Part shown: in pieces, positions 10,246 to 55,625 of the stretch | Position numbering within the stretch: position 1 is the stretch's first letter | Layout: each line of letters begins with the position of its first letter | DNA from: Monocercomonoides exilis PA203 | Taxonomy: Eukaryota; Protista; Preaxostyla | Reading direction: 5' to 3' | Length of the DNA: 64,000 nt | Assembly (NCBI GenBank): GCA_001643675.2 | Contig: LSRY02000055.1 | Span: 124,001-188,000, forward strand | Program-made: the position numbers and the translations under genes | The notes under the pieces: generated by a model | What the model was told of the DNA's origin: nothing | Databases searched by the model: none | Seen by the model: only the letters and a program-made list of their open reading frames with translations

Positions 10246-10916
10246 CTATTTCCATATCTTGCGTAGCACTGGCCGAAGATTCTTCCCTGCACTCCAACGA
10301 TTTATGTTGAAAACCACTAAGCTGTTGTCCGATCGCAGCAACAGCTGGGATATTTTGTTTTCTTGAATTGTCTGCGAAAAATGGCGAAGCGCTTGCAAAA
10401 CAGCTAGTTGTTCTCTGAAGTTGGACGATTGGCGATGGGCATAGTTGGGGAACTTGGCGTGCCAATCCATAATGTTGAAATTCACTCTGAATGTTGCACC
10501 CCATGCTGTTTCCGCAGCATCTGTCGTTAACACAGCCTGGGGAATAAACACTGGTTAAAATGGTTTCTGTCGATTTTGGCTCAATATCCATTGCCACTCC
10601 TGAATCTCCCTCAACACTGAAGCATTCATCCTCATCACACCGCTCCATTCGTATGTATTCACGTTCCTCTGCAGGAGACGATGATGAGCTGTAAGGTGAA
10701 GTGACGCATCCTGGTACACGAATCTGACTGCGCTGAGCTTTCCAATTGCTTATGCAAAATCCTTTATTCGAATTGTTTTGGCTCTTATTGCCTTCACTCT
10801 CCATTGACTCAACATCGCTTTGAGAGATCCCAACCTCTCCTCGCTCAATTGAACCGTGAATGTTTCTGTGTCCCATGCAAATCCCAGATAAGTGAATTTT
10901 CTCCCCGGGGTTAATG
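10246..10916 (-). pseudogene. RT C-terminus and RNase H of DIRS-like element, with in-frame stops
   Basis: KCSLTPGRKFTYLGFAWDT; LTTDAAETAWGA, SSNFREQLAV, LLRSDN (RNase H D/E/D). Confidence 0.85.
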
Positions 10917-10924
10917 AACATTTG

Positions 10925-13900
10925 GGCATAGGTCTGAATCGTACCATTTTGTTGAAGGCTTTAAAAATTCTGAAATTCACATACTAATATTCGTAATAAT
11001 TATTAGCAATAGGAACCACTCGGAATGAAGCAAAAAAACAATGTTGAAAAACACTAACAAAATTTATTGATCAACTTACCATAATATTTTCTTTTCAACT
11101 GACTGTGATTTAAAATTCAATTTACCGACTTTGTGGAGTTTTAAGCGATTTTTTAATTCAATATTTGAAGAAAAAGTTTAATTTATTATGCTGTAATTGG
11201 AAAGAAAAGACAAATATTCATTTATCTATCGTGATTATTTCTGAATAAGAAAATACGCGATATATCAGCTTTCACAAAATAACATGATTTCAAAATTGGC
11301 TTATGAGAAATAAAAGTTTGCAAATGCATGTCCAATAGTATGAATATGTTTCCATTATTGATTTTGAAGATTACAATATGTTTTTTGAATATTCTTTGTT
11401 GAATTTTTTTTTGAAACAATATTTTGAAATTTATAAAATTGAAAAAGTTTCGATTGGATATGTGTCCTTCATTTCAATGCTCATGAACACGATTGTTAAG
11501 CTTGAAGGAGGAGAATCGCTGTTTAGAAAGGATTTAGGTGCATGAATGAGACGAATTCATTGAAGGAAGATTTATAAAGTTTGATGGTTCAAAAACTACA
11601 GTGGAAACAAAGGAGAAGATGAAATATTCAGTTGAATGTCTTTTTCAAGAGGAAATTAGAGAAGATGAATAGAATGAAAGAAAATGGATTGGGGTTTGGA
11701 TATGCAGCTGAAATGCATTGGAAGAAGGAGCAGTGAAACGGAAGGGATGAAAAAGGCACAGAATATTAAAAAATGTTGGACAAGCGTGCATGAGGTTTGA
11801 TATTGTGATTGGATTTAGTGGGAAGTTGGAAGAAAAGGAAGAAAGAGAAGAAAAAGAATAATGGAATGGAGATACTGTGGAAGGTTTATGAAAGAGGCCG
11901 AGAAGTATTAATAGGTGATGATTCTGTGCTTGTTATGATTGGGGATTTCGACTTTAATATAGCTGTTGGAGATGATTATGGAAGAGACATTATCTGCATG
12001 TTTCGAAGCAGCATCAGCAGAATAACATGCTTAAGAAAAATAGAGAAAGACGAGTGGCATTGTGCAGTGAGTGAAGGCGAAGCTGAGGAAAGGATGCCTG
12101 ATGTGCACACACCTCATGGAACAGATGCACATGGCAAAAGATGTTGAGGAGGTGTTGGATTTTGGAAGGGCACGGAAAGAAGAGGGAGATGAAGAACATT
12201 TGGAGTGAGTGGATCTTGTTATGACAAGAGAAGAAAGATGAAGGAAAGGGAGCATTTGAATTGTGTTATGCACAGAGGGTTTGGAACTGTCTTCATAAAT
12301 TTATTGGGAATTGCTTTGTGATGTTTTGAGAGATTTCAATCTCTGCACTCTCTCTTTTTTTTTCATTAAAATTGTTGATTTTCTTTTTTCAGAACAATTC
12401 TGGGTTTGCACATTTTTGTTCCATTATCAGTTTTTTCTTTCATTCACTTTTTATTCCACAAAACTTGATAAAATACAACACATGAATGTTTTGTTTTGCT
12501 TTTGTTTCAGATTTTGTAACGAATTTGTGAAAGTCCATTTCAAAAGAAAACATTTATTCTAACATTTTATCAATATTGCGATTCGATATTTTTTATGAAA
12601 AAATTCAGAGTTCGATAAATGAGGAGTGAATCAGAATTATAAGAAAGCAAGCACTTCTCGTTTTGGCAACAGCATCTTATAGGATCAGGTTTTGATTTCG
12701 GTTCCTTCAAAGTTGGCAATTCAATCTTTGAGAAGATACAGTTTTATTGACTTTTTTATCTCACTCCATCCGTCGTCAGCTGCCTCTATTCCATTTCAAG
12801 CGCACATTTTGGAAACGCTCTCCCTTCTGATGTTGACAAATTGATCACCACATCTATTTGTGAAAGAATTCTGCTTCTCGCTGATACCACAAACATACTC
12901 GTCGAAGAAGGATTTGCATTTGAGAGCAATCAACCTTCAAATGAATCATTTCAAGATGGCCTGTCGTCACATTGAACAGCTCTCTTGTTGATGAAAGTGC
13001 CCGTGTTTCGATCGAACTTTTATCTTTGCCTTTCCCAATGACCGAAATTTTCTTTTCCCCAATCTCAACTGTTGTTGCCTCGCTTGTGTGATTCCCATCC
13101 ATCAGCGTGACTGACAAGCTAATCTGCACCTCGCACATCTCAAACGCCTTCTTCACTGTCAGACACGGATTTGTTTCATTTACCCCACAAAGCGGAGATG
13201 TATCATTTCCATTCACCGAGACATAGATCGTCTTGTCCTTCAGCCAATACCACTTTTCCGTGTGCTGAAATGTCCAAGCATTTGCATTTGAGTAGTTGTA
13301 GGCATAGCACATTCTCTTCTCATCTGCATTTGTGGTGTAACATTCATGAAATGGATTTCCTGACTCTAAATACAGATTGTATGTATCTGCAAATTCAGCA
13401 TCATGTCCACGTGGATAAGTTGCATCTCTACAGCTGCATTCATGAAAAAATAAGAAGAAGCAATATAATTTATTATCAGGCGATGTTGCTCGATTTGGAT
13501 AAAGACACAATCCTCCTCCCTCTTGCCGTGCTGAACATGAAATAAATTGAATGCTCCTCATTTTGAATTGTGTGGCGGGAACAGTTTTACAAAACATGCC
13601 TCCATTACAATTTCCAAATAGCGTGCACGACGTGAAACTGCAGTCAAACACATACGCGCTCTCTCCTTTGCCATTTTCTGTTCCAATACACTCTGATTCT
13701 TAAACATGAAATCTGGAAAGAAAAAGCCAATTTCTTATGTTACTCGCTTTGCAATTCTGGAATTCGCATCCGCTGATCCTGACACACGAAGTGATATTAT
13801 AAGCACATATCTTTCCTCCATAATTTTTTTGGGCAGTGCAGGCATTGAATGAGTTGTTCTCAATATTTATTGAACTGATTGAACGACACATAATTCCTCC

Positions 13901-14471
13901 ACCACAACAACATACAGAGCAGTCATTGAACAAGCATTATTAAACCGGAAGCATCAGATGACAGGCCGTTTTAGAAAATAGCTCTTCCATTCGAAGTTCC
14001 GTTATCATGAAAGACAATATTTCCACAGATTTCGATTAATTCCTTGTGCACTTAAAAATATGTGATTTCGAACGGTAACCAAAATGATCAATTATCTCTC
14101 ATTTATCGATCTTATTTCAGCAAAAAAAATGCATATAGCAATGGCATTCATTAGCGAAGATCTCGAAAATATCAATCAAACATTCAATTTTAAAAAAACT
14201 CTAAAATGCATTCACCACATTCATGAATATATATAATGAGCGATGAAGCTAACAAACTCCTTTAGAAATTTCAAAAACAAATTATTGTGGGATAGATCTG
14301 TATTTAATAATAATATGGGAAGTTGATATATAATTTTTTTGGTGTTTTTCAACATTGTTTTTTTGCTTCATTCCGAGTGGTTCCTATTGCTAATTATTAT
14401 TACGAATATTAACATGTAAATTTCAGAATTTTTAAAGCCTTCAACAAAATGGTACGATTCAGACCTATGCC
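10925..14471. mobile_element. Non-autonomous long-TIR DNA element (3547 bp) with 8-bp TSD, carrying host gene fragments
   Basis: ~165-bp TIRs start GGCATAGGTCTGAATCGTACC (10925-~11090 and ~14305-14471), with about 4 mismatches in the first ~128 bp. TSD AACATTTG is at 10917-10924 and 14472-14479. Excision restores the RT frame. Confidence 0.93.
12740..14010 (-). pseudogene. Internal fragment of the giant surface-protein family, inside the TIR element
   Basis: FNDC..GGGIMC, AYNITSCVRISGCEFQ, MRSIQFISCSA, KLYCFFLFFHECSC, PCLTVKKA align with the N-terminal third of ORF 17970-25601. Stops and frameshifts are present. Confidence 0.85.
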
Positions 14472-14479
14472 AACATTTG

Positions 14480-15183
14480 TCCTTGATAATCAAGCCCAGA
14501 TTTTCCAAAAATCGAATCACCTAGCTTGTGATTTCTTTCAATATGTTGAAATCTTGATGCAGGAGAATCAGATTGTCCAAGTTCGATGTCACTCTCACAT
14601 TCCATTTTCTTTTGATTTCCGTTTTGACTTTCCTCATGACTTTTGTGAAATACCTTGGTGCATCTGTGTATCCGAACGGCATGCCGTTGAAAGCGTAATC
14701 TAAACCTTTTAATCTGAATGTGAGATATGGTCTGAGTTTATTCGAAACTGGAATTAGATAATATGCTTGAGACAAATCCATCGTCACCGCGAAATCGTTC
14801 CTCATTATTAGCCTTTCCACTGTTCTTTTGTTCTCGCATTTGAAATGAACTTTTTTCATTGCAGCATTCAGAATTCTGCAATCCAAAATCTGCCTCCACG
14901 CTCCTGACTTTTTCTGAATGAGAAACACATTGTTCCGGAATTTCACATCTTTGGGAGGAATTCTGCTCACAATCCCTGTTTCCAGCTGTTCCTTCAATTC
15001 CTTTCGAAAAGCCATCCTTTGGTTCATACTCATAAGCAATGCTCCATCCCTGATTGTCTTCTTTTCCAAACCATCTCTTGCCTCGCGATTGCGCAAATGA
15101 GCCTGGACTCCATTTTTGATGAATTTTTCTTTGTCTATTTTTCTCCATTCTTGAATATAGTCCGCTGTCAGACCTCCTTCCTT
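14480..15183 (-). pseudogene. Reverse transcriptase N-terminal part of DIRS-like element
   Basis: GGLTADYIQEW, NVFLIQKKSGAWRQILDCRILN, MDLSQAYYLIPV, FNGMPFGYTDAPRYFTKVMR. The YxDD motif is degraded to NLDN and there is a TAG at 14521-14523. Confidence 0.9.
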
Positions 15184-17969: not shown

Positions 17970-20900
17970 CTACACATCGTTTTCAATCAATTCTCTCAAT
18001 GATTCTTTCACTTCTGCCAATGTTGGTCTTTCGTTTGGCTCATCTGCCCACATCTTCTCCATCAGCTCAATCAGATCTTCTCCTTCAATTCCTTCTGTCA
18101 GTGGTCGCACTCCATCTCTCATCATCTCTTGTGCTTCTTCTGCCTCACACTCACTCAATGGTACTTCTCCTGTTGTCATTTCATGGAGAACCAGTCCAAG
18201 TGTGAAAACAACTGCCTTTTCAATTCCCTCTTCTTCATCTCCCGCTTCAGGCGCCTTCCATCGCTTCATTTCTTCCTTCTGCTTTTCATCTTTCAATTCC
18301 TCTGTCAAAACAAATATTTCATTTTTAATTCCTTCCTCAACAAAGATCGAATATGGGCACAATTGTTTCCCCATCATTTCCACCCTTTCGTCTCCAACTG
18401 ATATCAAATGCTCAAATAGCTCTGCCACTGCCATCACCACTTCCTTCCCATCAACAACATCCATCACCCTTGTTCCCAGTGTGAAATCACCTTGAACTGA
18501 ATGAATTACTGAGTGCAATATTTTCAGATTCTTTTTCTCTTTCTCTCGAAATGGCTTCTTTGCTGATATAACATTGAGTGAATGAGATTTTGGCACTCCA
18601 GCAGTAGAATAATTCTCGGAAAATGGCAATGGTGATTCCAAATCTGGAAGATCATTTTCATTCAGCATTCCATCAATCATTGATGGAGGCTCTGGAATAC
18701 CTTCATCGTTGTCAATGAGAAGTGGAATTTGGCTCGTCATTCCTTCCAGCAATGTTGATGGCATGTCACTCATCTCAAAGCTTCCTCCATTGTTTTCCCT
18801 TCTTCTCCTCTCCATCTTCTGCATTATTTGCTCGTTTTCTAATCTCTCTTTTTCAACTTTCCTTTCTGATTCTATCAGTTTCCTTCGCTGAACCACAGCC
18901 ATCACAACAATCACAAATAACAGAATTGCAACAATTTCAATACAACCAATAAAGGCAAATAAACTCCATTCAAAATTCGATCCTCCTATATTATTTTTAT
19001 TCCCTCCTTCTGAAATTCTATCATCTCCAGATGAAGGAGACACAGTTTTATTTATCACAACCAATTTATTAGAGGATAATGAATTCCCTTTCCCAAACAG
19101 GATGCTCATGCTCACTTCTGTTTTCTTTCCCATCACTTCCACCTGCTCTGACGTGATAACCGAATGAATTTCGTTTTCTGAAACACACTCATTTTCTTCT
19201 ATCTTTTGTGTTTGGATCAGTTCAACGTCCCCGTCTTTCATGCTTATCTTCAGCGACAAGTTGCACGGAAGAAGCAGCTTCCCGCGAATGCTCAAGTCCA
19301 TGCTCCCGCTCGCCTGTGTTGTGTTCTTCACTTCTTCCAGAACCGGGATGAAATACGATGATCCTCTTTCCGAAGCTATCCCTCCCAATTGGCATCCTTC
19401 GTCCAATATCCACAGAGATGTGTTTTTCTCGATTCCATCTCCCCCTTTCACACTCACAATATTCAACTCCCCGTTCCCTGTGCATATCACATTCCTTCGC
19501 GCTGATGGATATCCCTCAATAGAGGGGTTGTTGTCCTCAAACTTGCTGTTTTCAATCTTCACGCTTCCTCCGCTCACCCACAGCCCTCCATTTTTGCTCT
19601 TCATAACCGTTGTTTCCTTCATCTCCACATTGCTGCTTTCAATGTCAATCAACGAGCCGCTCCATTCGCACAATCCTTCTTTCCCCTTGTTTCCTTCGTT
19701 CGCTGTCTTTGCTTCTTTCTCCTCTTTCTCTCCATCAAACACACATATCTCAACCCTCACATCCTTGGATCGTCTTATCTGCATCATGCTTCCCTTCTCC
19801 ACCGAATTCGCGCTTTTTTCAAACGAGCAGTTCAGCACACTCACCTCCTGTTCTGCATCTTCCATCGCAACAACACATCTTTCTGATGCTACACTCACAT
19901 TCTCTATCGTCATGATCTTCATCACCACTTTCGCTTTACCCCCAACACTCACAACATCTCCCTCACTTTTGATATTTGAAATGCTCGTTTCAAGCAGCGT
20001 CACATTCGATTCTTTGTTGAATAATAGCACCGATCCTGCTGAATGCAAATCCCTGAATGTTGTTTCCGATATCCTAAGCTCTCCGCTTTCCACGCTAACA
20101 ATTGAATTGTTCAATTTCAGTTCATCGGAAGAGGAGAAGAATTTACATTCTTGAATTTTCGTAATTCCGTTCTTCACTTTCAGAATGAAGCTATGAGTTG
20201 ATATTAAAGTATCTTCAAACTGGAATGAGCACCTCTCAACTGCGCTTTCATTTATAAACTCCATGATGCAATCCTTCTCTGCCGATTTCTCAATCTTGGA
20301 TTTCAGCTTCACAATCGCCTGTGTCTTTTTGAACGATCTGACAACCAGATCTCCAATCACACATTCTCCAGAAACAACTCCTTCTCCGTCAATCAGAATC
20401 GCATTCATCACTCCTTCCTGAATGTGATCAATCGCGCAGTTGATGCTCTTGCATGGATTGCTCTGTGCCCCGCATCGTCTGCCATCTGCCCCTCCTTCAT
20501 TCACAAATACTTGAAGACCCTTATAGAATGTAATCCGAGGAATAACATCCATGTCAGTATTCCCTTTTAAATCGCTCCCACAGATGGAGTTGTTTGTACG
20601 CAATGATTCCTGATTGAAGTTCAAGGCAAACAGTGTTTCGTTGATCTGGTCTAGAATTGAATGGCATTTGATGAATATGTCTTTCCCAACAAATGCCTCG
20701 TTCAGCCTGAACAAGATATTCACAATCTTGAAATTCAGAGATGGAATCTGACTTTCATCATCAATGTTAACATTTGGATCGGCTCCATCGATGAACAGCC
20801 CTCCACCACGCCCTGATTCCGTCGAGCATCTGCACATCGAAAATGAGCTTCCATTAACTTTCAAAATCGATTCTTCACTCTTCAGCACCACTTTCATTCC

Positions 20901-23900
20901 TCCCCCTTCTGTGCTCAAATCGCTCCTGCACGTAGACATTGCGCAGTCTTCGATCGTGCATTCCATCGCATAATCAAACGATCCCAATTCAATGACGCTC
21001 GCACTGCTTCCTTCGTTCATGATGTTTTCAAACGAACAGTACACAACTTTCAACACAGGCTTGTTGCCATTCAAATGAGTGTTTTCATTTCCATTCATCT
21101 GGTTTTCCTCTTCTATCATCGAAATCAGGCTATTTTCTTTCAAAGTGGCTGATGAAATGTTCACATTCTGGATCGTCACCTGGCTCGCACTTTGGCTGAA
21201 AGCAATGAATCCTTTCAATTCGTTGATCTTATTCAACGTGCAGCTCTGAACCGCCGCGCTTCCTCCATTCACTTTTATCAGGCAATACTCAAAACTTTCA
21301 ACTGTCCCGCCAGCTGACCCAAATGAGCAGTCTGTGACTGACAAGACTGTATTCGTTCTTGACGATTCAATGAATACTGCATGACTGGTGGTTATGCTGG
21401 GTTTGGTGAACGAGACATTCACAAACGACAGACTCACATTAGATGATATCATTGCACCACTGCTGACAGCATTCCCATCTTCATCAGTAATTGTCACGCT
21501 TGTCCCTTTCTTTGTTCCTTTTATCGCAACTGCTGGTGCTTCTGAATCTGGCAAAGTTGGCAACGAAGACAAGAATGATATCGGATGGCTCAGCAACCCT
21601 GAATCCCCAATGCCGATCTGGGATTCGCCTTTTCCAAGTGGCTCATATCTCAGTGATATCAAGTGGTCGATCGATGAGCATGGTGCTTCAGAAAACCCAC
21701 ACCCGCTGAAGTCTCCTCCTTTCTCCTTCGATACAAACCCATCCTTGCTCCAGTTCCTCCACAAATATACAACCAGTGGAATCACATATCCATTTTCTCC
21801 TGTTGTCTTCCTTTCCCATCCACACAGCTCATCCAATGACTTCTTATCACTTGCACTCAATTCCTCTTTCAGTTTTTCGTTTGACATAACCTCACTCAGG
21901 TCATTTCCCGATATAAACACTTTCTTCCCTTTCCAAGCATTGCACCCGCTGAATGTCACTCCTTCCATCGTAAATGATCCCATTGTATCTGCCAGTCGAA
22001 CAAACATCCCTCCTCCCATTCCTCCTTTTCTCTCCGAACTATCCTCTGTTGGCACCTGGCATCCTGTAAATCGCACATCATTGATCTCCAAACTTCCTCC
22101 GTTCTCAACTGAAATCATCATCCCTCCTCCTTTCATCCCACTTCCACCTGTGCATATTGTTGAAATGCTGCAGTTATCCACAACTGCGCTTCCTCCTTCT
22201 TTTATTGCAGCACCAATGCAACCTCTTCCTTCTCCGCTCCAACCTTCCACCGTCACTCCACTCACTCTGCTGTTCTTTATCTCCAGCATCCCTCCATTGC
22301 TTATTGTTATTGGCGACTTCCCATTCATCGTCACCACACTTTCCATCACAAATCCGTCGACAGTCAGAGTTCCTCCATCAACGTTCAACACGTTGTATCC
22401 TATCTTTCCACCCGTAAATGCTCCACTTTCAAATAACACTGAACAGCTCGCCAGACGTAGTGTTGATGATGAATGGATGAGTGCTCTTCTTCTCGAACTC
22501 AACTGTCCTTTCACAACAAATGAAATACTGCATATAGTCAGAGAATTCGAACATCCGACAAAACAATCTTGTGTGCTTGATCCTCCATCAACCACATTCA
22601 CTTTCACCCTTGTTATCTCTTCTCCTGCTGTCACTTTTCCCGAAACACTCACATCGAATGAAGGCCCGATGATTTCATCATTTATTGATGATTCAGAAGA
22701 AACCTCAACTGTTTGGAAGCCTTTCGGAACTCGAGTGCTCATGCAATAATTGATTGTTTCACACCCAAACTTCTCAAATCCACAGTAGCTGTGATCCAAT
22801 GCCCTCTCTCCGCTCCCATCGACAGTCAGCTTCGATTCGATGGTGAACAAATACACAAACAGCGGAATCACTTTCTCATCTTTCCCATCCTCGCTCCCGC
22901 AAAACTTCAATTCATCCGACGGAATGGTGCTTGCGTCAAAAAATCTAAATGAGCTTGCATTCACTTTTGTCTCCAACAGCACACCACTCCCACAATGAAC
23001 AAACACATCCTTCCCATATTCTGCCATATTCTCCTTCACTTTTGAAAACTCAACATTTTCTCCAATTGTCAATCCACATTCTCCGCTCTCAATTCCCACA
23101 AATATTCCTCCTCCTCTCCCTCCATTTCCCTCACTTCCCCCATTATTCTCTGCCTTATTCCCATCAATCACACTCGTTCCATTCACCACAGCTTCCCCAT
23201 CACCTGTCAAGCAAACATAAAGTCCTCCCCCATTTCCATTGTGGCACTCACATCCTTCCATTGTTGTATTCCACACCACAAATGTCTCTCCACCCTTCAC
23301 ACTTTTTGCTATTACAACACCATCTCCTTCAGTCCGATTCACATTCCGAATTGTCACATTCCCCAGCAGACTCTCTTCTGATGATGATCCTGCCGATGAC
23401 GGATCTGTGAAAAGAGGCTGTGATATTTTCATGTTTTCTATCTCCACATCAATCGTCTTCAACTGCCTCAGCGCCACTTCAAACACACACTTCGTCATTC
23501 CACCCCCTCCTGATGTCGAAGAGTCGATCACAACATCCTCCAGCGAAAGAGTCCCGCTCCCCAGCGACACCACAAACACACTCGGCGATGAGCTTCTCAT
23601 CGAGTTGTGATCGATCCCCACATGCCCCACCTCCAGTTGGCCAGAAGATATGCTGAACAGCGTTGTCGAAGAGTTCGAAAGGGCACTCGTCCCAATCACA
23701 CTCACTGTCTTCCCTTTCCCCAAAACAGAAATCTTCTTTTCCCCAACACTGATCGTCGCCCCTTCACTCACATGCCTCCCACCCAGCAACGTGATTGTCG
23801 AGCTCAGCTGCTCCATGCTCGATTCCACTGCATGTCCCACTGTCTTGCAAGGTGCTGCCTCACTCACCCCACACAGATTGCTCGTGTCATCCCCACCCAC

Positions 23901-25601
23901 CCCAACATACCGATCCTTCATCCCCTCCTTCAGCCAATCCTTCTTTTCTGTGTGTTGATACACCCAATCATCGTCGGCATAACAGACTCTCTTCTCATCA
24001 GTATTCGTTGTGTACGATTCACATAATGGGTTATTCGATGAAAAGTGATTGAAATTGTCTTGAAAATACACATCGTGGCCATATGGAGTGGAAGCGTTGC
24101 AGCTGCAATCGTAGAAGAAGAAGAAATAACAATAAAGCTTGTTGCTTGGTGCTGTTGATTGACATGGAACAAAATACAATCCTCCTCCATATGATTCTGC
24201 AGAGCACGAAATAAATTGGAGGCTCCTCATTTTGAATGCAGCTGGAATAAAAAAACAATTCATCCCTCCACCGCCGGTGCTCGAGAGTGTACATGAAGAA
24301 AATGAGCATTCAAACACACAAGCACTCTCCCCTTTGCCACTTTCTGTTCCAATACAGGAAGATCCCGAAGTCTGAAATGTTGAAAGATAAAAACCTCCTC
24401 CATCAAAACATGATTTGCATTTCTGGAATTCGCATCCACTGATCCTGACACATGAAGTAATATTATAAGCATAAATCCCTCCTCCATTATCTCTTTGAGC
24501 AGTACAAGAATTAAATGAATTGTTCTCGATCTTGATTGAACTGATCTCATGGCACATAATTCCCCCTCCACCATAATACGCATAGCAGTCGTTAAACGTA
24601 CAATGTTTTACTGAAAGTGCCCCTGATACCAGATTATTCATGTTAATCGCCCCTCCACTCGATATCCCGTCCGTTACAGAATCAATTTCTCCTGTTGTCC
24701 TCGAACCACTCCATTCACACCAAGTGAATGAGTTTGCTCCATTATCTGTTGTGTTTTGTCTCCCTGGAGTCAATTTTCTATCTGCAGTTCCAATGCATTC
24801 AACATTTCTTGTCCGACAACACCCGATGAATGATGTATTTGAGGCTGTCAAGGAAGCCAAGGGGTTGTTGAGGGAATGAACAATCCCGCTATCATATGCA
24901 TCACAAACTGATGAAAATGAGCAACTGATCATCATACAAGTGGTTTTGGTTGACATTGCGGTCGAAGGTGAGCATGCATCATTTGCTGTGGAGATGTTGA
25001 AAAATGTCAGATGTGAGAGGGATATTAGGGGAATGGAAGGTGATGAGAGGAACGGGGCTGATGAGACACAAAAAGAAGAGAAGTGTGATTCACTCACTGA
25101 AATACTCCCTTCAATGTCTTCTCCATATCCATATCCATCTCCTTCTCTTCCTCTTCCTCTTCCACTTTCTCTTTCACTTCCTTTTTCTTCACCTTCACTT
25201 TTCTCCCTTCCATATCCCTTCCCTCCAAACAGCCTGCCTGAATAGATCTCTCTCCCTCTTCTCCACCATTTTAATGTGATGTTTGTCAACACCCCTCTGC
25301 ACCCACCCAGTTCAAATGCACCTGCACCATCATCCTTCCCCATCTCCACAACACACCCTCTCACCACAACCACGCTCCCCCTCAAACCACACACAATCCT
25401 CCCAATTTCATCTCCAATCAGCTCGATCCCCTTTAACTCAAGTGATGAATTAATTAATCTCACCTTTCCGATGATTTGGCTTTGTTCACTTATTCGTTTA
25501 TAATATTTGAAAGAAATAAGAGATTTTGTGTCAATGTGTTTGTTTTGTTTGATGTGCTTCGCATCATCCAGATTTTCAAAATTCTCTCTGTTTTTGTGCA
25601 A
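17970..25601 (-). CDS. Giant receptor-like protein: repetitive Cys/Gly-rich ectodomain, one TM helix, C-terminal kinase-like (pseudokinase) domain
   Basis: Uninterrupted 2543-codon ORF whose true start is probably upstream (~25900). Repeated GGG and CG...PC.(S/T)I modules, and TM WSLFAFIGCIEIVAILLFVIVVMAVV. RWKAPE, VFTLGLVLHEMTTGEVP and MW..EPNERPT match kinase subdomains VIII-XI. Confidence 0.9.
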   Translation of the reverse strand: MHKNRENFENLDDAKHIKQNKHIDTKSLISFKYYKRISEQSQIIGKVRLINSSLELKGIELIGDEIGRIVCGLRGSVVVVRGCVVEMGKDDGAGAFELGGCRGVLTNITLKWWRRGREIYSGRLFGGKGYGREKSEGEEKGSERESGRGRGREGDGYGYGEDIEGSISVSESHFSSFCVSSAPFLSSPSIPLISLSHLTFFNISTANDACSPSTAMSTKTTCMMISCSFSSVCDAYDSGIVHSLNNPLASLTASNTSFIGCCRTRNVECIGTADRKLTPGRQNTTDNGANSFTWCEWSGSRTTGEIDSVTDGISSGGAINMNNLVSGALSVKHCTFNDCYAYYGGGGIMCHEISSIKIENNSFNSCTAQRDNGGGIYAYNITSCVRISGCEFQKCKSCFDGGGFYLSTFQTSGSSCIGTESGKGESACVFECSFSSCTLSSTGGGGMNCFFIPAAFKMRSLQFISCSAESYGGGLYFVPCQSTAPSNKLYCYFFFFYDCSCNASTPYGHDVYFQDNFNHFSSNNPLCESYTTNTDEKRVCYADDDWVYQHTEKKDWLKEGMKDRYVGVGGDDTSNLCGVSEAAPCKTVGHAVESSMEQLSSTITLLGGRHVSEGATISVGEKKISVLGKGKTVSVIGTSALSNSSTTLFSISSGQLEVGHVGIDHNSMRSSSPSVFVVSLGSGTLSLEDVVIDSSTSGGGGMTKCVFEVALRQLKTIDVEIENMKISQPLFTDPSSAGSSSEESLLGNVTIRNVNRTEGDGVVIAKSVKGGETFVVWNTTMEGCECHNGNGGGLYVCLTGDGEAVVNGTSVIDGNKAENNGGSEGNGGRGGGIFVGIESGECGLTIGENVEFSKVKENMAEYGKDVFVHCGSGVLLETKVNASSFRFFDASTIPSDELKFCGSEDGKDEKVIPLFVYLFTIESKLTVDGSGERALDHSYCGFEKFGCETINYCMSTRVPKGFQTVEVSSESSINDEIIGPSFDVSVSGKVTAGEEITRVKVNVVDGGSSTQDCFVGCSNSLTICSISFVVKGQLSSRRRALIHSSSTLRLASCSVLFESGAFTGGKIGYNVLNVDGGTLTVDGFVMESVVTMNGKSPITISNGGMLEIKNSRVSGVTVEGWSGEGRGCIGAAIKEGGSAVVDNCSISTICTGGSGMKGGGMMISVENGGSLEINDVRFTGCQVPTEDSSERKGGMGGGMFVRLADTMGSFTMEGVTFSGCNAWKGKKVFISGNDLSEVMSNEKLKEELSASDKKSLDELCGWERKTTGENGYVIPLVVYLWRNWSKDGFVSKEKGGDFSGCGFSEAPCSSIDHLISLRYEPLGKGESQIGIGDSGLLSHPISFLSSLPTLPDSEAPAVAIKGTKKGTSVTITDEDGNAVSSGAMISSNVSLSFVNVSFTKPSITTSHAVFIESSRTNTVLSVTDCSFGSAGGTVESFEYCLIKVNGGSAAVQSCTLNKINELKGFIAFSQSASQVTIQNVNISSATLKENSLISMIEEENQMNGNENTHLNGNKPVLKVVYCSFENIMNEGSSASVIELGSFDYAMECTIEDCAMSTCRSDLSTEGGGMKVVLKSEESILKVNGSSFSMCRCSTESGRGGGLFIDGADPNVNIDDESQIPSLNFKIVNILFRLNEAFVGKDIFIKCHSILDQINETLFALNFNQESLRTNNSICGSDLKGNTDMDVIPRITFYKGLQVFVNEGGADGRRCGAQSNPCKSINCAIDHIQEGVMNAILIDGEGVVSGECVIGDLVVRSFKKTQAIVKLKSKIEKSAEKDCIMEFINESAVERCSFQFEDTLISTHSFILKVKNGITKIQECKFFSSSDELKLNNSIVSVESGELRISETTFRDLHSAGSVLLFNKESNVTLLETSISNIKSEGDVVSVGGKAKVVMKIMTIENVSVASERCVVAMEDAEQEVSVLNCSFEKSANSVEKGSMMQIRRSKDVRVEICVFDGEKEEKEAKTANEGNKGKEGLCEWSGSLIDIESSNVEMKETTVMKSKNGGLWVSGGSVKIENSKFEDNNPSIEGYPSARRNVICTGNGELNIVSVKGGDGIEKNTSLWILDEGCQLGGIASERGSSYFIPVLEEVKNTTQASGSMDLSIRGKLLLPCNLSLKISMKDGDVELIQTQKIEENECVSENEIHSVITSEQVEVMGKKTEVSMSILFGKGNSLSSNKLVVINKTVSPSSGDDRISEGGNKNNIGGSNFEWSLFAFIGCIEIVAILLFVIVVMAVVQRRKLIESERKVEKERLENEQIMQKMERRRRENNGGSFEMSDMPSTLLEGMTSQIPLLIDNDEGIPEPPSMIDGMLNENDLPDLESPLPFSENYSTAGVPKSHSLNVISAKKPFREKEKKNLKILHSVIHSVQGDFTLGTRVMDVVDGKEVVMAVAELFEHLISVGDERVEMMGKQLCPYSIFVEEGIKNEIFVLTEELKDEKQKEEMKRWKAPEAGDEEEGIEKAVVFTLGLVLHEMTTGEVPLSECEAEEAQEMMRDGVRPLTEGIEGEDLIELMEKMWADEPNERPTLAEVKESLRELIENDV

Positions 25602-48880: not shown

Positions 48881-49879
48881 AATAAATTGACGGAATGAAA
48901 ATGGTAAAAAAAAATGCAAGTGTCAACTTTTTGTATTTTATTATTTTTCGAAAAAAAATAATTTCTTCTTGAAAGCAAAGAGCTCGTTCTGAAAAGAAAC
49001 AAAAAAAGAAATTTATGTGGATGTCTGTATAAATAATCTTGTTTTATTATTCATGTTTTCGGTTCGATAAATAACAATTATACATAAATTCATGACATAA
49101 GAAAAGTTAAAAGGCTCAATAAAGACATCTTCTTCTTTGTCCCAGCTGAACCATTTATTCGAAAAACGGTTGTGATAAATTTATCATAAGAATTGAAAAT
49201 ATCTTCCCAATGACAAACAATCTTTGAAAAATCAACATATTAAAAAAGAGGTGAGATTTTAAAAATTATCACTTTAGTAAAAAAATGGGTGATTATTTTT
49301 GAAATCATATTTTTTCATATAAAATTTTCGGTCCAAAACTTTGTCTTGAAAATTAACATATGTCAAAATTTTTTTGAAAAGTGACAACAGATCAAAAATT
49401 AAACCCATGACAGTTAATTATTACTCATTCCGTTCCCATAATTCTTATGAGAAATTGATGCTATCTTGAAAATTTTTGTTTGTTCATTGCAAACCTCTAT
49501 ATGAAAAGAAAAATATTTCAACAAAAAATTATATATCTTTTTTATTGATCAAAATTAAATCATTTGTTTCACAATGAAAAAGAGTATAATTTTCTTGAAC
49601 AATTATGCAATTGCTAATAAATACAATAAACAAGGTATGCATCGATAATTTTTCCTGATAAACTTGATTTTCACAGATAATTCATATTTTCATTTGAATA
49701 GAATTTTTTGTTGTTCAAAATGAATAACAACATTTCTTGGAAGCAGGGACAGCTCTGAAAAGTTGGAATAAACAAAAAAATTACCAAATATTGATGGTTC
49801 ACAATTTGTTTTTCTTTATGTTTAATTAATATTTTTTTGCATTCTTTTTTACAGCTTGACATATTTGTTGCAAATTTCA

Positions 49880-50640
49880 GAACTCCTATTGTGAGGAAGT
49901 TAGTAACGTGGGGCTGCACATCAGATTTATTTGTGTGAGAAGAGAATATGCTGCTGAGGATTGAGAAATACCAGTGCGAGATGACATTTGTATCCTTAAT
50001 CGCAGACAATCACGAGGATAACAAGCAATGCGGAGGATATGAAGTGCCTTGTGGATCGCTGAGTGAAGGAATTCAGCGCATCATTCAGTCACGCCATTCG
50101 TAGCTGTTGATCAAAAAAGATAGCCTTTGTCGGAGAATGTGAAGCAAAGGACGTAATTATCCACTTATTACAACCTCTAAGAATGTTCGGTTTGAGAGAT
50201 TGAAATTCAACTTTGATTAATCGTTTTCTTATTCTGAAAGTTCAGTCTTTTATGAAGCAAATGGACAATTTTTTATTTGATCTGTTGATTTTTCTTCGGC
50301 TGGGGAATTAAATAGCATTCAAAATATTGAATTTAATTCAACATTGTTGAGCATCTATGATGAAATCCTTCATATTAACAACTGTTCAATATCGCACCTT
50401 TCATTCATGAAACCTTCATTCCTGTTGAATGGAGTTGATATCTCAATCACAAATGTAAAACAGTAACAGATCGAATCAATGGCAAATGCATTTGAGATTG
50501 GAAATTGTGGAAGCGTTGCATCTAATGGAATGGCTGTGAATGAAGTAGAGTTGTTTGAAGGATGCATTTTTCCTTGAGGCGATACAATTTCTGGAATCAT
50601 ATATACTTGGAGCTTTTCTGACAACAACTGTTAAGGGAAT
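49880..50640 (+). pseudogene. Degraded fragment of the giant surface-protein family
   Basis: DNHEDNKQCGGYEVPCGSLSEGIQRII matches the family CG...PC.S module; ILHINNCSISHLSF; many stops. Confidence 0.6.
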
Positions 50641-50684
50641 TCAAATGGAGCCTCTTCCTTTTTGCACCATCTCCTCCTCCTCCT

Positions 50685-50916
50685 CCTTCACCTTCACCTT
50701 CACCTTCACCTTCACCTTCACCTTCACCTTCACCTTCACCTTCACCTTCACCTTCACCTTCACCTTCACCTTCACCTTCACCTTCACCTTCACCTTCACC
50801 TTCACCTTCACCTTCACCTTCACCTTCACCTTCACCTTCACCTTCACCTTCACCTTCACCTTCACCTTCACCTTCACCTTCACCTTCACCTTCACCTTCA
50901 CCTTCACCTTCACCTT
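50685..50916. repeat. (CCTTCA)n perfect hexamer array
   Basis: About 38 perfect units, direct reading. Confidence 0.95.
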
Positions 50917-51339
50917 CTTCAACTTCTTCTTTTCAAACATTTTGTTCAGATATATGTTGAAAGAAGACTGTTGTATTCTCAGTGTAAACTGCATATTTGT
51001 TTCTTTTAAAAGCTTTTTGAAAGAAAATGATTTCGACAAGAAACAGGAGATAGAAAAGGATGAAAAAGGAAAAGAAGATGATAACTCCGATGAACATGTC
51101 ATCAGTGAAATCAAAAGGTCGATAGCATCTTATGCACTCTCAAAGAACAGCAGCATGTTGTTTATTGCAATCTCTTTATTACTCGGAGCCTTCTCGTGCT
51201 TTGCTGAAGAAGAAGAAGAAGAAGAAGAAGAAGAAGAAGAAAAAGAAAAAGAAGAAGAAGAAGAAGAAGAAGAAGAAGAAGAAGAAGAAGAAGAAGAAGA
51301 TAAAGATAAAGAAGAAGAAGAAGAAGAAGAAGGCAAGAC

Positions 51340-54300
51340 ATTGCATCCTTCACCATCCCACTTTCACGCCATCGCCTCATGGAACTGCACCACACGCTAC
51401 TAGACCCACAGCTGCAGCCCAAAGCAGATCTCCGCTTCCATCTCTTTCTTTGCAGCTACAGTCCCATCAACTCCACAACCAGCCGCTCCATCCGGAACAT
51501 CGCCAGCCTCCCTTCTTTCTTTAACACCTCCGACTGCATGCACTACACATCCAGTTTCAGCCCCACATCCATCCCTTCCCCTGCCCTTGTTGATACCAAC
51601 GAAATAACCAGCATCCAGCCATTCGGATCCATATTCAGCAGCGTAAAGTTCAGGCTCACTGCCTTCTTAACCGTGCTTTTCTCAGATTGGACAGAGTTGC
51701 TCACCAGAAGGCTGCGTCGTACGCATCAAGCAACTGCAGGTACAGCGTGAAAAAGTCGTAGCACTGATTCATCTTTAGCACCAACGCAAATGATGACGGA
51801 CAGTACCTAGACAGCTGGTGCTCATTCAGGAAGATAGCAACGATAGCGTTTGTGGTGTCTTCAGATCGCACACACACTGAAAAGACTCCTGCTGTGAATA
51901 CATGATCCATCACCAACCTTCGTGCGTTGATTATAATGAAAAATCAATGGATCGCAACTGCGTATCTCATCATGAAGCACCTTTATCGCCTATTTCTTCT
52001 TCATTGCTTCCACTCGGTTGTTGTTCAGCAGAATCCGCAGAAACACTGATGTGTCCGCCTCCCCCTTCTCCGACTGAAGACCTTCAAACTCCTCAAAAAT
52101 CATCTTGATCTTCTTCTCCGACACTCCTTCAAGCACAGCGTTGATGCACTTCGTGAACATCCAGAACGATACCATCAATTAGTTCTCGCTCTCCTCTATA
52201 AACTCCTTTGACATCACCTCTTTCAAACAGTGATGGTTTGTGGAACAGGAAGAACGACAGCTCGTCTCCTGTGAACTCCTCCCGCACAAACTTCCCAAAC
52301 AGCCACACCTCCGCAAAGTCCTTCCGGAACAGCGCCACGCCGGAGATCATCGCCCACCGCGCAGCCTCACTCTTCTTCTGCACCGCGTGCTTCTCCCCCA
52401 GCCACATGCACACAAAGTATCCAATCCATAACCTTGAAACCGCAACTCCCACTAACACAGCGCTGCACTCACACAAGTCTGTTGCGATCTTGTTACGGAA
52501 TATCCACAGAATCCTCATCAGTTTCCACACTTGCGACAACTGCAGCCCTATCTTCTGCGGCCTCGACAAACGCTTCATCTGCACATTCAACAGTGACGTG
52601 ATCTGCATCCAAAGCACATGCGCTGTTTTGAGTTCCACATGTTCAGTCGATTCAAACGCTGTGCTAATCATCCGCTCCATCGGAGAAGACTCCAGCAAAG
52701 GCACTGAACCAGCAATATTTTCCTCCTCATAACCTTCCTTCTCCCACAAAAGTTCACTCGTTCCATCTTCTCTTTTAGCTCCTTCACATTTACAGTCAGC
52801 TGCACTTCTATCTCTTCATGTATCACCTTCATTTTCTTCCACTTCTGCTTCTTTTACGCATGCTCCGTATGCTTCTTCTCAATCACCTCCTTGAACAGAG
52901 CCTTCTGCTTGCTTGTCATCTGCTCCTTCACTTTTGACAGATCCATTAACATCTTCGTTTCCTTTTTTATATTGTTCATCATCTTCTTCAACACTTGAAT
53001 CAGCTCTTCCACCACCGCCGGATCTCTCTTCCCCATAACTGTTGGCTTCTCTCACAACACTCACATTGTTCCCCGCTTTCGCAACAAGTCCCTTTGTTGT
53101 GTCGGACCTAAACATCGCAACGCACCCATCGCAGCTGTTTGCAGCAAATCATTCACAGCATTTTTCTCACAGCTACGATGGCAGAATGAATGAAGCTGAA
53201 GATGGAGCAATTCCATCCACATCAGAGGCCAACAAAGAAAGCATGATTTGCTTCACCACCAACCCGCCAGCGAATTATCGCTGTACCCGCTCACCAGCTC
53301 ACACTGATGTGTCAGACGTTTCTTCTCCTTCTCAATCCCTCCATCAATAAATTCAACCTTCTCCTTCATCGCAACAAGTTACTCTTTCAGCTCCTTCACT
53401 TCTGTGATGTGCTTATCACTCTTCTTCAGAATCTTCCTCTCCTGCAGCTGCTCCTCCAGTTAACTCGGAGGCTTCTATATCTGCTCTTCGTCCCGGATCC
53501 TCTGCAGCAGCATGTTGAACTCCAGAAACTTCTTCTTCATCTTCTGCTTTGCCTTCTCATATTTTTCCTTTATATTCTCCTCCTTCTCCCCCCTTTTTCA
53601 CTCCTTCTTTTCCTCCCTCTTTGTCTCCCCTTTCTCCTTCCTCGCCTCTTCGCGCTCCTCCAGTAAAAGCCAGCGCAATCGCTGATGGAGACAGAACCAC
53701 ATCCTCCATCCTCCATCCTCCAACACCTTCTCCACAATCTTTCTCGCTTCGCACACTGCAACCCCTCATCCCATCACGTCGTCATCCAGTTTTAACACCA
53801 CACGCCTCGACTGCGACGATCGTGACACCAACAGCGCTATTGCCTGTGGAAGCAGCGACGGGTCAAATAAATTGAAGATTGATGGGAACGTATTTACATC
53901 TGGAGCGGAAAAGATCTGATTGCTCCCCGACTTTGTGTACACTGAAACTGAAAGCGACGGAAGCGGCCCCACCAGCGGAACCGAAAGCATAGCCGAAAGC
54001 GCCACATCGTATGCACACACAACACCCCCGTACAGCACAGCCCGCCCAGCCACAACATATCCCAGCAGCGGCAGCATCTGCTGCAGCGACAGCGGCATGT
54101 GTAGCCCATACACTCCAGCCGCCTCAGGCTCAACAATCTGCAGCCTCATCTCGATTTCGTTTATCGCTGCTGTCAATATGAATGACTTCTTCACCGCCGA
54201 CGCATCAGAAAAGTCAATCGCAATCTCCGATAATGATGGCTTCTTATTCTCTGAAGATTTCTTCTCTTCGCTTTTCCCTCTCCGAAATGGCGAAGTTGAT

Positions 54301-54430
54301 CAGCGTGCTGCTCAAGTTGAAGAAGACGAAGACGAAGGCACTGAGCGAAGAGAAGACTGCTGCGCCGCCCTGGCCACAAGAAACTTCTTCAGAAACTCCA
54401 TTACGTCTGCAGTCTGCTCCAATGGTGACT
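51340..54430 (-). pseudogene. Large, relatively GC-rich decayed gene of unknown function (coiled-coil central part)
   Basis: Chain of minus-strand ORF pieces (53766-54194, 52854-53036, 52129-52749, 51701-51916) broken by stops and frameshifts, with coding-like composition. Confidence 0.55.
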
Positions 54431-55625
54431 CAAACACAACATTTTCTTTTTTTTCAGAATGATAAACAGCAGAGAAAGCCTGCTTTCTTCGTACAATTTG
54501 AAAAGATTGAAGCAGAACATCTTTATATAATGTGTCTGTATAAACTGAAAGGGAGAAGGAAAAGGCACATTCTGAGGTGAAAGAAACTTGTTTGATACAA
54601 ACTATTTAAATATTAATATTTGAAGAGATAACATTTTTGAGTTTGTTACAAATGGATATTTATTTTGAAAAAAAATTGTATCATTCCACAATTTTCCTAA
54701 ATAATATTAATAATTGCTTTATGTCACCTCCTTTTTGAATACTATTCTAACGCAACGAGTGTTATTTTGACAAATCTTTCCTGTTAAAAAATTTCTTTAA
54801 AAAAATTCAAGAAATCAAGAAACCAATTTTATATATCTATCAACAAAAGAAAATAAAAAAAGCTTAATTGACATATAAAAATTTATAATGAATATTCGAA
54901 TAGATGAAATGAAGATGCAGAAATAAGAACATGCAATTCATTTGATTCAAATAGCTCGAAAGCAGTAGCTAACAAAAGCGTATTCTATTATATTATTAAC
55001 GTTCTGTATGTAATCATCAGATTTTTGAATGCTTATCAATAATAAGCTCAGAAAATAACAATATATAAAACTAATATAACAATAATGGGAACGGAATGAT
55101 CAACAATTTTTGATCATGTTTGATCTTTTGTGGGATAAAATTAAAGTCGAGGAACTTTTCGTAAAAATTTTGCCATATGAATGTTGAAAAGTGAATAGGC
55201 TTATTGAAGATATTATTATCTTTTATTCGGTAAAAACAAATGTTTTAAAAAGCAATTATCATTCTTTTTCTCTTTTGAATAAAAATTTTCTTTCAAAAAC
55301 AAACAATCGTTGAAAAATCCACACACCGAAAAAATATATGATTTCAAAAATAATCACACAAATTACAAAATTTTATTGAAAATTTCTTTTGCTTAAAACA
55401 CAGGTTAAAACATAAATTGCTCGTTTTGAATGAATGTCTATTTCAACTTATTAATCTTCTCAAAATTATATATCAATTCATATCATTATAATTGTATCAT
55501 TTCTTGTTGTACTTGAGTGAATAAGAATGAATAACATATGAAAAATCAGAACAAAATGAAAAAGTTATTTCTTTTGATGATGAATTATTTCGAAAAAATG
55601 TTCAGGTGGGTGATTTTTTTAACAT

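Follow-up and report, generated by a model that had tools for sequence, protein, structure and literature searches.

Structure and insertion site of the element

The genome of Monocercomonoides exilis PA203 comprises 82,301,135 bp in 101 contigs, to which all genome-wide counts given here refer. In one stretch of 64,000 nucleotides, which is called the window in the following, a DNA transposon of 3547 bp was identified at positions 10925-14471. The element starts with GGCATAGGTCTGAATCGTACC, its far end is the reverse complement of the same sequence, and it is flanked by two exact copies of an 8-bp target site duplication (TSD), AACATTTG, at 10917-10924 and 14472-14479. Between its terminal inverted repeats (TIRs) it carries a piece of a gene for a giant tyrosine-kinase-like (TKL) receptor, the cargo, and it interrupts the reverse transcriptase (RT) of a DIRS-like retroelement. 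This combination of a non-autonomous TIR element, a TSD and an internal host-gene fragment is a characteristic of Pack-type transposons. The features of the locus are the following (window coordinates, strand where assigned):

10750-10916, minus strand: downstream continuation of the RT (SLTPGRKFTYLGFAWD...), with RNase H-like and tyrosine-recombinase-like open reading frames (ORFs) further down
10917-10924: left TSD copy, AACATTTG; octamer present once in eight uninterrupted DIRS paralogs
10925-11088, plus strand: left TIR, 164 nt, starting GGCATAGGTCTGAATCGTACCATTT; 93% to the right arm, first 26 nt common to transposase-bearing Merlin elements
11089-12692: non-coding backbone X, including a purine-rich stretch; kept in 10/10 copies, and partly and collinearly in sister families of ~4 kb
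12693-13981, minus strand: cargo, a disrupted segment from inside the beta-helix ectodomain of a giant TKL receptor kinase (E 9e-108)
13982-14308: subterminal spacer between cargo and right TIR, without gene homology
14309-14471, minus strand: right TIR, located by BLAST and by the terminal 20-mer
14472-14479: right TSD copy, AACATTTG, exact
14480-15096, minus strand: upstream half of the interrupted DIRS-like RT, RVT_1 positions 1-166 of 205; the frame continues past the excised site

By BLAST, the TIRs extend over 164 nt with 93.3% identity (10925-11088 against 14471-14309), and arms of 145 nt at 10920-11064 and 14332-14476 are 94% complementary without gaps. The terminal 20-mer of the element occurs exactly twice in the window, with zero occurrences expected. 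Both ends start with 5'-GG (GGCATAGGTCTGAAT...), as is typical for Merlin elements, and the TSD of 8 bp, exact in the window copy, falls in the 8-9-bp range of this superfamily. No Pfam matches were obtained for the interior ORFs. Likewise, tblastn with a Merlin transposase gave no match in any of the ten copies of the family described below, and a profile of three Merlin transposases reached at most 1.4 bits against all six frames of these copies. The window element is a non-autonomous member of its family and encodes no transposase of its own.

An earlier note, made from the letters of this DNA, had described TIRs of ~165 bp, an exact 8-bp TSD, the lack of a recognisable transposase, ~1.3 kb derived from the giant surface-protein family and an RT which is rejoined when the element is removed, and in all these points the structure was recovered as described. 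A second decayed coding-like stretch, which the note placed at ~11460-12300, could not be substantiated, since neither a protein match nor codon periodicity among the copies was detected; it is the purine-rich part of the non-coding backbone X. For the whole of X, an origin from a second captured gene and one from the kinase-encoding end of the giant gene were also considered; both were rejected because X matched neither the C-terminus of the giant protein nor Pfam nor any other part of the window, and codon periodicity was absent.

The RT half at 14521-15096 (minus strand) was identified by a match to RVT_1 positions 1-166 of 205 (Pfam, E 2.6e-13), and the short downstream piece gave no RVT_1 match in the Pfam search. 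Two further matches of the host retroelement are weak, an RNase H-like one with E 0.003 and one to Phage_integrase with E 0.0019, which is below Pfam's cut-off, and the host DIRS copy contains stops of its own. In-silico removal of the element and one TSD kept the RT frame (...FLENLGLIIKDKCSLTPGRKFTYLGF...). The exact joined 30-mer, used as a query for the empty site, gave no match because the uninterrupted DIRS paralogs differ from the window site by a 3-nt indel. Eight such paralogous copies were identified, with the sequence AACATTT(G/T)TCCTTG(TTG)ATAATCAA and the octamer once in each. The octamer being single in the uninterrupted paralogs, the element inserted cleanly into the DIRS-like RT, and its boundaries are thereby fixed.

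In three runs of the source sample, read contigs were found which jump from 10920/10923 to 14483, with a few letters added. The junction implied by them, AACATTT(G/T)TCCTTGTTGATAATCAA, is present at eight places in the assembly, and the reversed control at none. An empty allele was considered as the source of these contigs and rejected: they represent paralogs, one of them being an exact match to contig C33, and reveal no polymorphism.

The Merlin clade and its transposase-bearing relatives

The genome-wide BLASTN search with the TIR which the earlier note had proposed revealed nine further paired copies of 3.5-3.6 kb, located on contigs C32, C51 (two), C12, C23, C34 (three) and C10, in addition to a few remnants. 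The ten copies are alignable with the window element over their full length, with 64-88% identity and ~2% gaps. Their TSDs are perfect over 8 bp in six cases and match at 7/8 positions in one. The subterminal spacer of the window copy is 92% identical to that of its sister copy L025 and just 52-63% to those of the other subgroups. The flank of another member, copy L027 (positions 40-486), codes for a segment of a DIRS-like RT/RNase H with 33% identity to that of the window, so that a second family member lies in or beside a DIRS-like element.

When the terminal 20-mer was searched in the genome with at most two mismatches, 113 matches were obtained, compared to none for the reversed control. 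Most of these are paired and fall into three groups. Termini of the type ...TCTGAAT... belong to the 3.5-kb family of the window, the type ...TCTAAAT... to about 21 pairs of 2.4 kb, and the type ...TGTAAAT... to pairs of about 4 kb and to longer units. The backbone X shows collinear homology with the ~4-kb sister families. The clade sharing these termini comprises ~56 elements, which together make up roughly 0.2% of the genome, and perfect 8-bp TSDs were found in 13 of the 21 related elements examined.

Copies L028 and L032 contain an extra 5.4-5.6 kb. This was considered as a longer autonomous form of the element, and rejected, as the additional DNA represents two unrelated nested insertions (L028:557-5945 and L032:550-6123). 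Both inserts interrupt the left TIR, close to position 50-63 of the element, and the one in L032 matches another repeat, which is also present at 49366-55175 of the window.

The superfamily was assigned by means of elements which share the termini and contain transposase sequences. The first 26 nt of the window element are identical in L038, L048 and L049, elements on contigs C13, C11 and C15 with transposase remnants inside. These remnants are 86-89% identical among themselves and 45-48% identical to the enzyme of a longer unit on contig C7, in which ORF L041:728-1957 was identified as DDE_Tnp_IS1595 (PF12762, E 6.7e-12), a Merlin-type transposase. This ORF begins 227 bp inside a terminus differing from that of the window element at 2/20 positions. 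The genome contains at least 100 matches to the Merlin transposase and, over its whole length, no match to the MULE domain PF10551. Because of the 26-bp termini shared with DDE_Tnp_IS1595 elements, the 8-bp TSDs and the absence of a MULE domain, the element is assigned on its sequence features to Merlin (IS1595-like DDE), not to Mutator. Of the two superfamilies to which the earlier note had attributed the termini, Merlin was thus retained and Mutator dropped.

A Mutator-like element (MULE) or a hAT-type element, rather than Merlin, would share some of these features, since long GG-starting TIRs with TSDs of ~8 bp are known from MULEs and 8-bp TSDs from hAT elements. However, with PF10551 lacking a match genome-wide and with these termini located 227-242 bp from DDE_Tnp_IS1595 genes, this assignment is considered very unlikely. 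For a Pack-MULE, in addition, a MULE partner is lacking in the genome, and the TSD is 8 bp throughout, not 9-10 bp.

The right end of the remnant element on C13 adjoins ORF L038:7440-8003, which contains a Pif1-helicase 2B domain (PF21530, E 2e-14). Possibly, the C13 element interrupted a Helitron-like gene or one of the Pif1 family here.

The proposed search for autonomous relatives yielded, besides the DDE_Tnp_IS1595 ORF in L041, an intact transposase ORF on contig C40, and no MULE. On contigs C21, C40, C7 and C74, elements were identified which carry larger pieces of the giant gene family, all of them tail-to-tail with the transposase. The C21 element (C21:186551-194386, 7836 bp) is flanked by a perfect TSD (CATTTTTT); its TIRs of 160 bp are identical, and it contains residues 702-1996 of a giant family member together with transposase remnants. 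The element at C40:833747-840620 (L047:3748-10000; 6874 bp) encodes an intact Merlin transposase of 513 amino acids (aa) at L047:3990-5531, with the ATG at L047:3990, and a giant-family ORF of 808 aa with a membrane-anchor-like tail and without a kinase domain. Of the elements identified, this one is the strongest candidate for an autonomous element that is active and carries cargo. The unit at C7:1625522-1636938 (L041 and L046) comprises 11.4 kb with an intact 410-aa transposase and ~6 kb of a broken giant-family gene, and a similar unit is present at C74:69871-81348. As a clean autonomous element the C7 unit was set aside, since its TIRs of 190 bp are perfect but no matching TSD was found; therefore, the C21 element with its perfect TSD and the C40 element are relied on here. 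The cargo of the window element corresponds in position and orientation to that of these four elements, and the place of the transposase is taken by the backbone X of 1.6 kb.

Origin and turnover of the cargo

The cargo at 12693-13981 (minus strand) is homologous to residues 334-736 of a giant protein encoded at 17970-25601 of the window, and spans about residues 320-736 of this 2543-aa paralog. In the window copy, its frame is disrupted by four stops and a frameshift. In the giant protein, a right-handed beta-helix region and a Tyr/Ser-Thr kinase domain, the latter with its C-terminal half, were recognised, and its relatives were all from M. exilis (120/120 among the matches listed). They belong to the tyrosine-kinase-like proteins, reported as the most numerous gene family in M. 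exilis (PMC6759080). At 3-1547 of the window (plus strand), the C-terminal piece of another gene of the giant family was identified, corresponding to residues 1701-2220 of the reference paralog with 33% identity.

A search of the genome with the cargo segment gave 2351 first-look candidates. The cargo is 64-69% identical on the amino acid level, over 322-352 aa, to P0049, P0054, P0069, P0073 and P0105, annotated MONOS genes of clade A. In the search for a parent gene suggested in the earlier note, a near-identical parent was not found, as the best DNA match of the cargo in the genome is 83%. Annotated kinase-domain genes of 1400-4300 aa far outnumber the element copies, and the cargos of the elements nest among these genes.

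On the DNA level, the cargo is matched best (76-83%) by sequences arranged as inverted pairs 3.4-4.6 kb apart, with equal-scoring arms within a pair, at C53:345382-350969, 383941-389471 and 420553-425345, at C80:1598470-1603308 and at other loci. On C53, termini of the GGCATAGGT type are limited to those of the window element. The paired loci of C53 and C80 possibly belong to a different Merlin family with long TIRs, or are genes arranged in inverted pairs.

The gene piece was found in 18/18 non-autonomous relatives, namely the ten 3.5-kb copies, two of the 2.4-kb and six of the ~4-kb elements; copies without cargo were not found among the ten or among the eight sister-family members examined. 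In all 18, the cargo derives from about residues 114-816 of the giant protein and lies in a single orientation in which the 5' end faces one TIR; the similar limits common to the ten copies and the sister families are about residues 290-334 and 680-736. With these data and the perfect TSDs of the clade, the Pack-like system mobilising pieces of the surface-protein family which the earlier note had inferred is well supported. The two findings it had named as counter-evidence, copies lacking the cargo and an interior derived from a decayed transposase, were not encountered.

By contrast, the capture of the fragment by the window copy itself was not confirmed, since the fragment is family-wide and also present in transposase-bearing relatives. 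In a classical Pack-type event, the window copy or its immediate parent would have captured the fragment privately by illegitimate recombination, and the long TIRs, the lack of a transposase and the gene fragment indeed resemble a Pack-MULE. However, the fragment is present with similar boundaries in all ten copies and in the sister families, and a near-identical parent gene, as expected for such an event, was not found, the best DNA match being 83%. A private capture is therefore considered highly improbable.

Region-by-region identity matrices of the copies revealed a mosaic. Copies L026 (C51:118020-121609) and L027 (C51:95232-98807) face opposite directions at a distance of 20 kb. Their left TIRs and X1, which is the initial ~0.8 kb of the backbone, show 100% identity, compared to just 57% in the cargo. 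Because their flanks differ, this was interpreted as a recent conversion tract between copies rather than a segmental duplication. Among the copies, the divergence of the cargo by codon position is 0.29, 0.26 and 0.40 for positions 1, 2 and 3, respectively, and open cargo frames of 390-455 codons are present in L028, L029 and L032. The synonymous divergence (dS) of the cargo is 0.38-0.57, far above the divergence of the backbone, with ratios of nonsynonymous to synonymous divergence (dN/dS) of 0.28-0.43. For L029 and L032, a cargo dS of 0.38 was determined, compared to 93% identity in X1.

When the ten cargos were placed in a tree together with annotated genes, they were divided by the deepest of the well-supported splits. 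One clade contains the window copy, L025 and L027/L030/L031/L033; the other contains L026/L028, L029 and L032, which are placed among the genes P0001, P0003 and P0004 and the window's own giant gene. A constraint placing the ten cargos in one clade was rejected (delta lnL 130, p-AU 0.003) in an approximately unbiased (AU) test on a 52-row subset of the 132-row alignment. With a single origin rejected, the cargo was therefore replaced or re-acquired at least once. Homology-driven exchange is favoured over fresh illegitimate capture as the putative source of this turnover, because the segment boundaries are nearly equal in both cargo groups. The suggestion of the earlier note that the system may help to shuffle the surface-protein family holds in one sense only, that of discordant histories of cargo and backbone.

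One ancestral capture followed by vertical decay, without later exchange with the gene family, would explain why all families contain the same segment in the same place and why the backbone is collinear. It is judged unlikely, since monophyly of the cargo was rejected and the cargo dS far exceeds the backbone divergence; moreover, dN/dS values of 0.3-0.4 and open frames of 390-455 codons in three copies are unlike neutral decay, and the window cargo is closer on the DNA level to other loci (78-83%) than to its sister L025 (76%). The same values could indicate that the fragment is maintained as a functional cassette, either expressed as a truncated protein or serving as a donor archive which diversifies the receptor family, and the coding-type divergence among the copies and the open frames are in agreement with this. 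Against it, the frame of the window copy is broken, the fragment is devoid of a start, a signal peptide and a membrane anchor, the low dN/dS was possibly inherited from the donor genes, and no RNA run holds the stretch. A maintained function appears as doubtful as decay after a single capture.

The explanation favoured here, with a probability of about 0.85, is that the window element is one of ten non-autonomous Merlin copies whose cargo was inherited from an ancestral cargo-bearing Merlin element and was later replaced. That the window copy did not capture the cargo follows from the presence of the same segment at the same place in all copies and in the 2.4-kb and 4-kb families. In the likeliest origin, internal deletions in such an ancestral element would have given rise to the non-autonomous families, which would be moved by cut-and-paste through a Merlin transposase supplied in trans. 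The later replacement of the cargo, at least once, could have occurred by gene conversion, by recombination between different lineages of the element or by a template switch in the course of gap repair. The window copy is probably old and immobile, since its TIRs are 93% identical, its cargo is broken, the host DIRS copy contains stops and the transposases with identical termini are all broken; its intact TSD indicates limited decay since insertion.

Several points weigh against this explanation. Past the 26-nt termini, no homology was detectable between X and the transposase-bearing elements, and the descent by internal deletion is deduced from geometry. An intact transposase with exactly these termini was not found, the one on C11 being interrupted and those on C13, C15, C45 and C9 containing stops. 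Mobilisation of the window family by an intact enzyme of the C40/C7 type, which is about 50% identical and has termini differing at 2/20 positions, is assumed. Movement by the Merlin transposase was deduced from sequence, with no transposition observed, and none of the RNA runs holds the element stretch. The cargo tree is a protein-level tree which includes decayed sequences (X at stops) and 35 of 114 genes. Independent captures, followed by recombination between elements, would also give non-monophyly of the cargo.

Comparison to known systems and implications for M. exilis

DNA transposons carrying gene fragments, the 'Pack' type, have been described chiefly in plants, among Mutator, CACTA and hAT elements. 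Internal-deletion derivatives are known as well, such as maize Ds from Ac and KP from the P element. Like these derivatives, the window element would have lost its transposase, kept its ends and been mobilised in trans; unlike them, it retains a passenger host-gene piece, and the homology between its backbone and the autonomous elements is just 26 nt.

The Pack-MULEs of rice, maize and Arabidopsis (PMC5861414) are likewise non-autonomous TIR elements which amplify host gene fragments between long TIRs, but belong to another superfamily with TSDs of 9-10 bp, compared to 8 bp in the window family. The window family further differs in that it always carries one segment of one gene family, also in transposase-bearing relatives, and in the turnover of its cargo between paralog clades. 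Tgm-Express, a Pack-CACTA of soybean (PMC1947982), is also a non-Mutator DNA transposon mobilising host gene fragments; it belongs to the CACTA superfamily, however, its TSDs are 3 bp long, and a single element contains several gene fragments which are unrelated to each other.

In Monocercomonoides sp. PA203, the Merlin families F1-F7 have been described from transposase-encoding copies with 8-bp TSDs (PMC8101967, PLoS One 2021). They agree with the elements described here in organism, in the DDE_Tnp_IS1595 superfamily, in the TSD length and in the number of more than 100 transposase copies. Their TIRs are mostly 23-29 bp, in contrast to the window element with its 164-bp TIRs, its lack of a transposase and its host-gene cargo, and that paper makes no use of the terms 'non-autonomous', 'MITE' and 'captured'. 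A literature search gave no report of Pack-type elements for Merlin or for a metamonad. The presence of Merlin in M. exilis is already published; for the cargo-carrying type described here, the name 'Pack-Merlin' is used.

In the M. exilis assembly, 35% was classified as 'unclassified repeat', which overlaps the tyrosine-kinase family and was left without an explanation by the authors (PMC8767320, PMC6759080). A Merlin clade which carries, amplifies and exchanges pieces of receptor ectodomains provides one concrete mechanism for this overlap. Since the clade is small, it explains a small part of the unclassified repeats. It is conceivable, though on balance rather unlikely, that Merlin acts as a mobile cassette system in which ectodomain segments pass in both directions between elements and receptor genes by gene conversion. 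If this were true, transposition would spread and reshuffle receptor modules, and some of the unclassified repeats overlapping the tyrosine-kinase genes would be explained by the system. The question whether transposons help to diversify the surface-receptor repertoire of a gut protist is thereby made testable.

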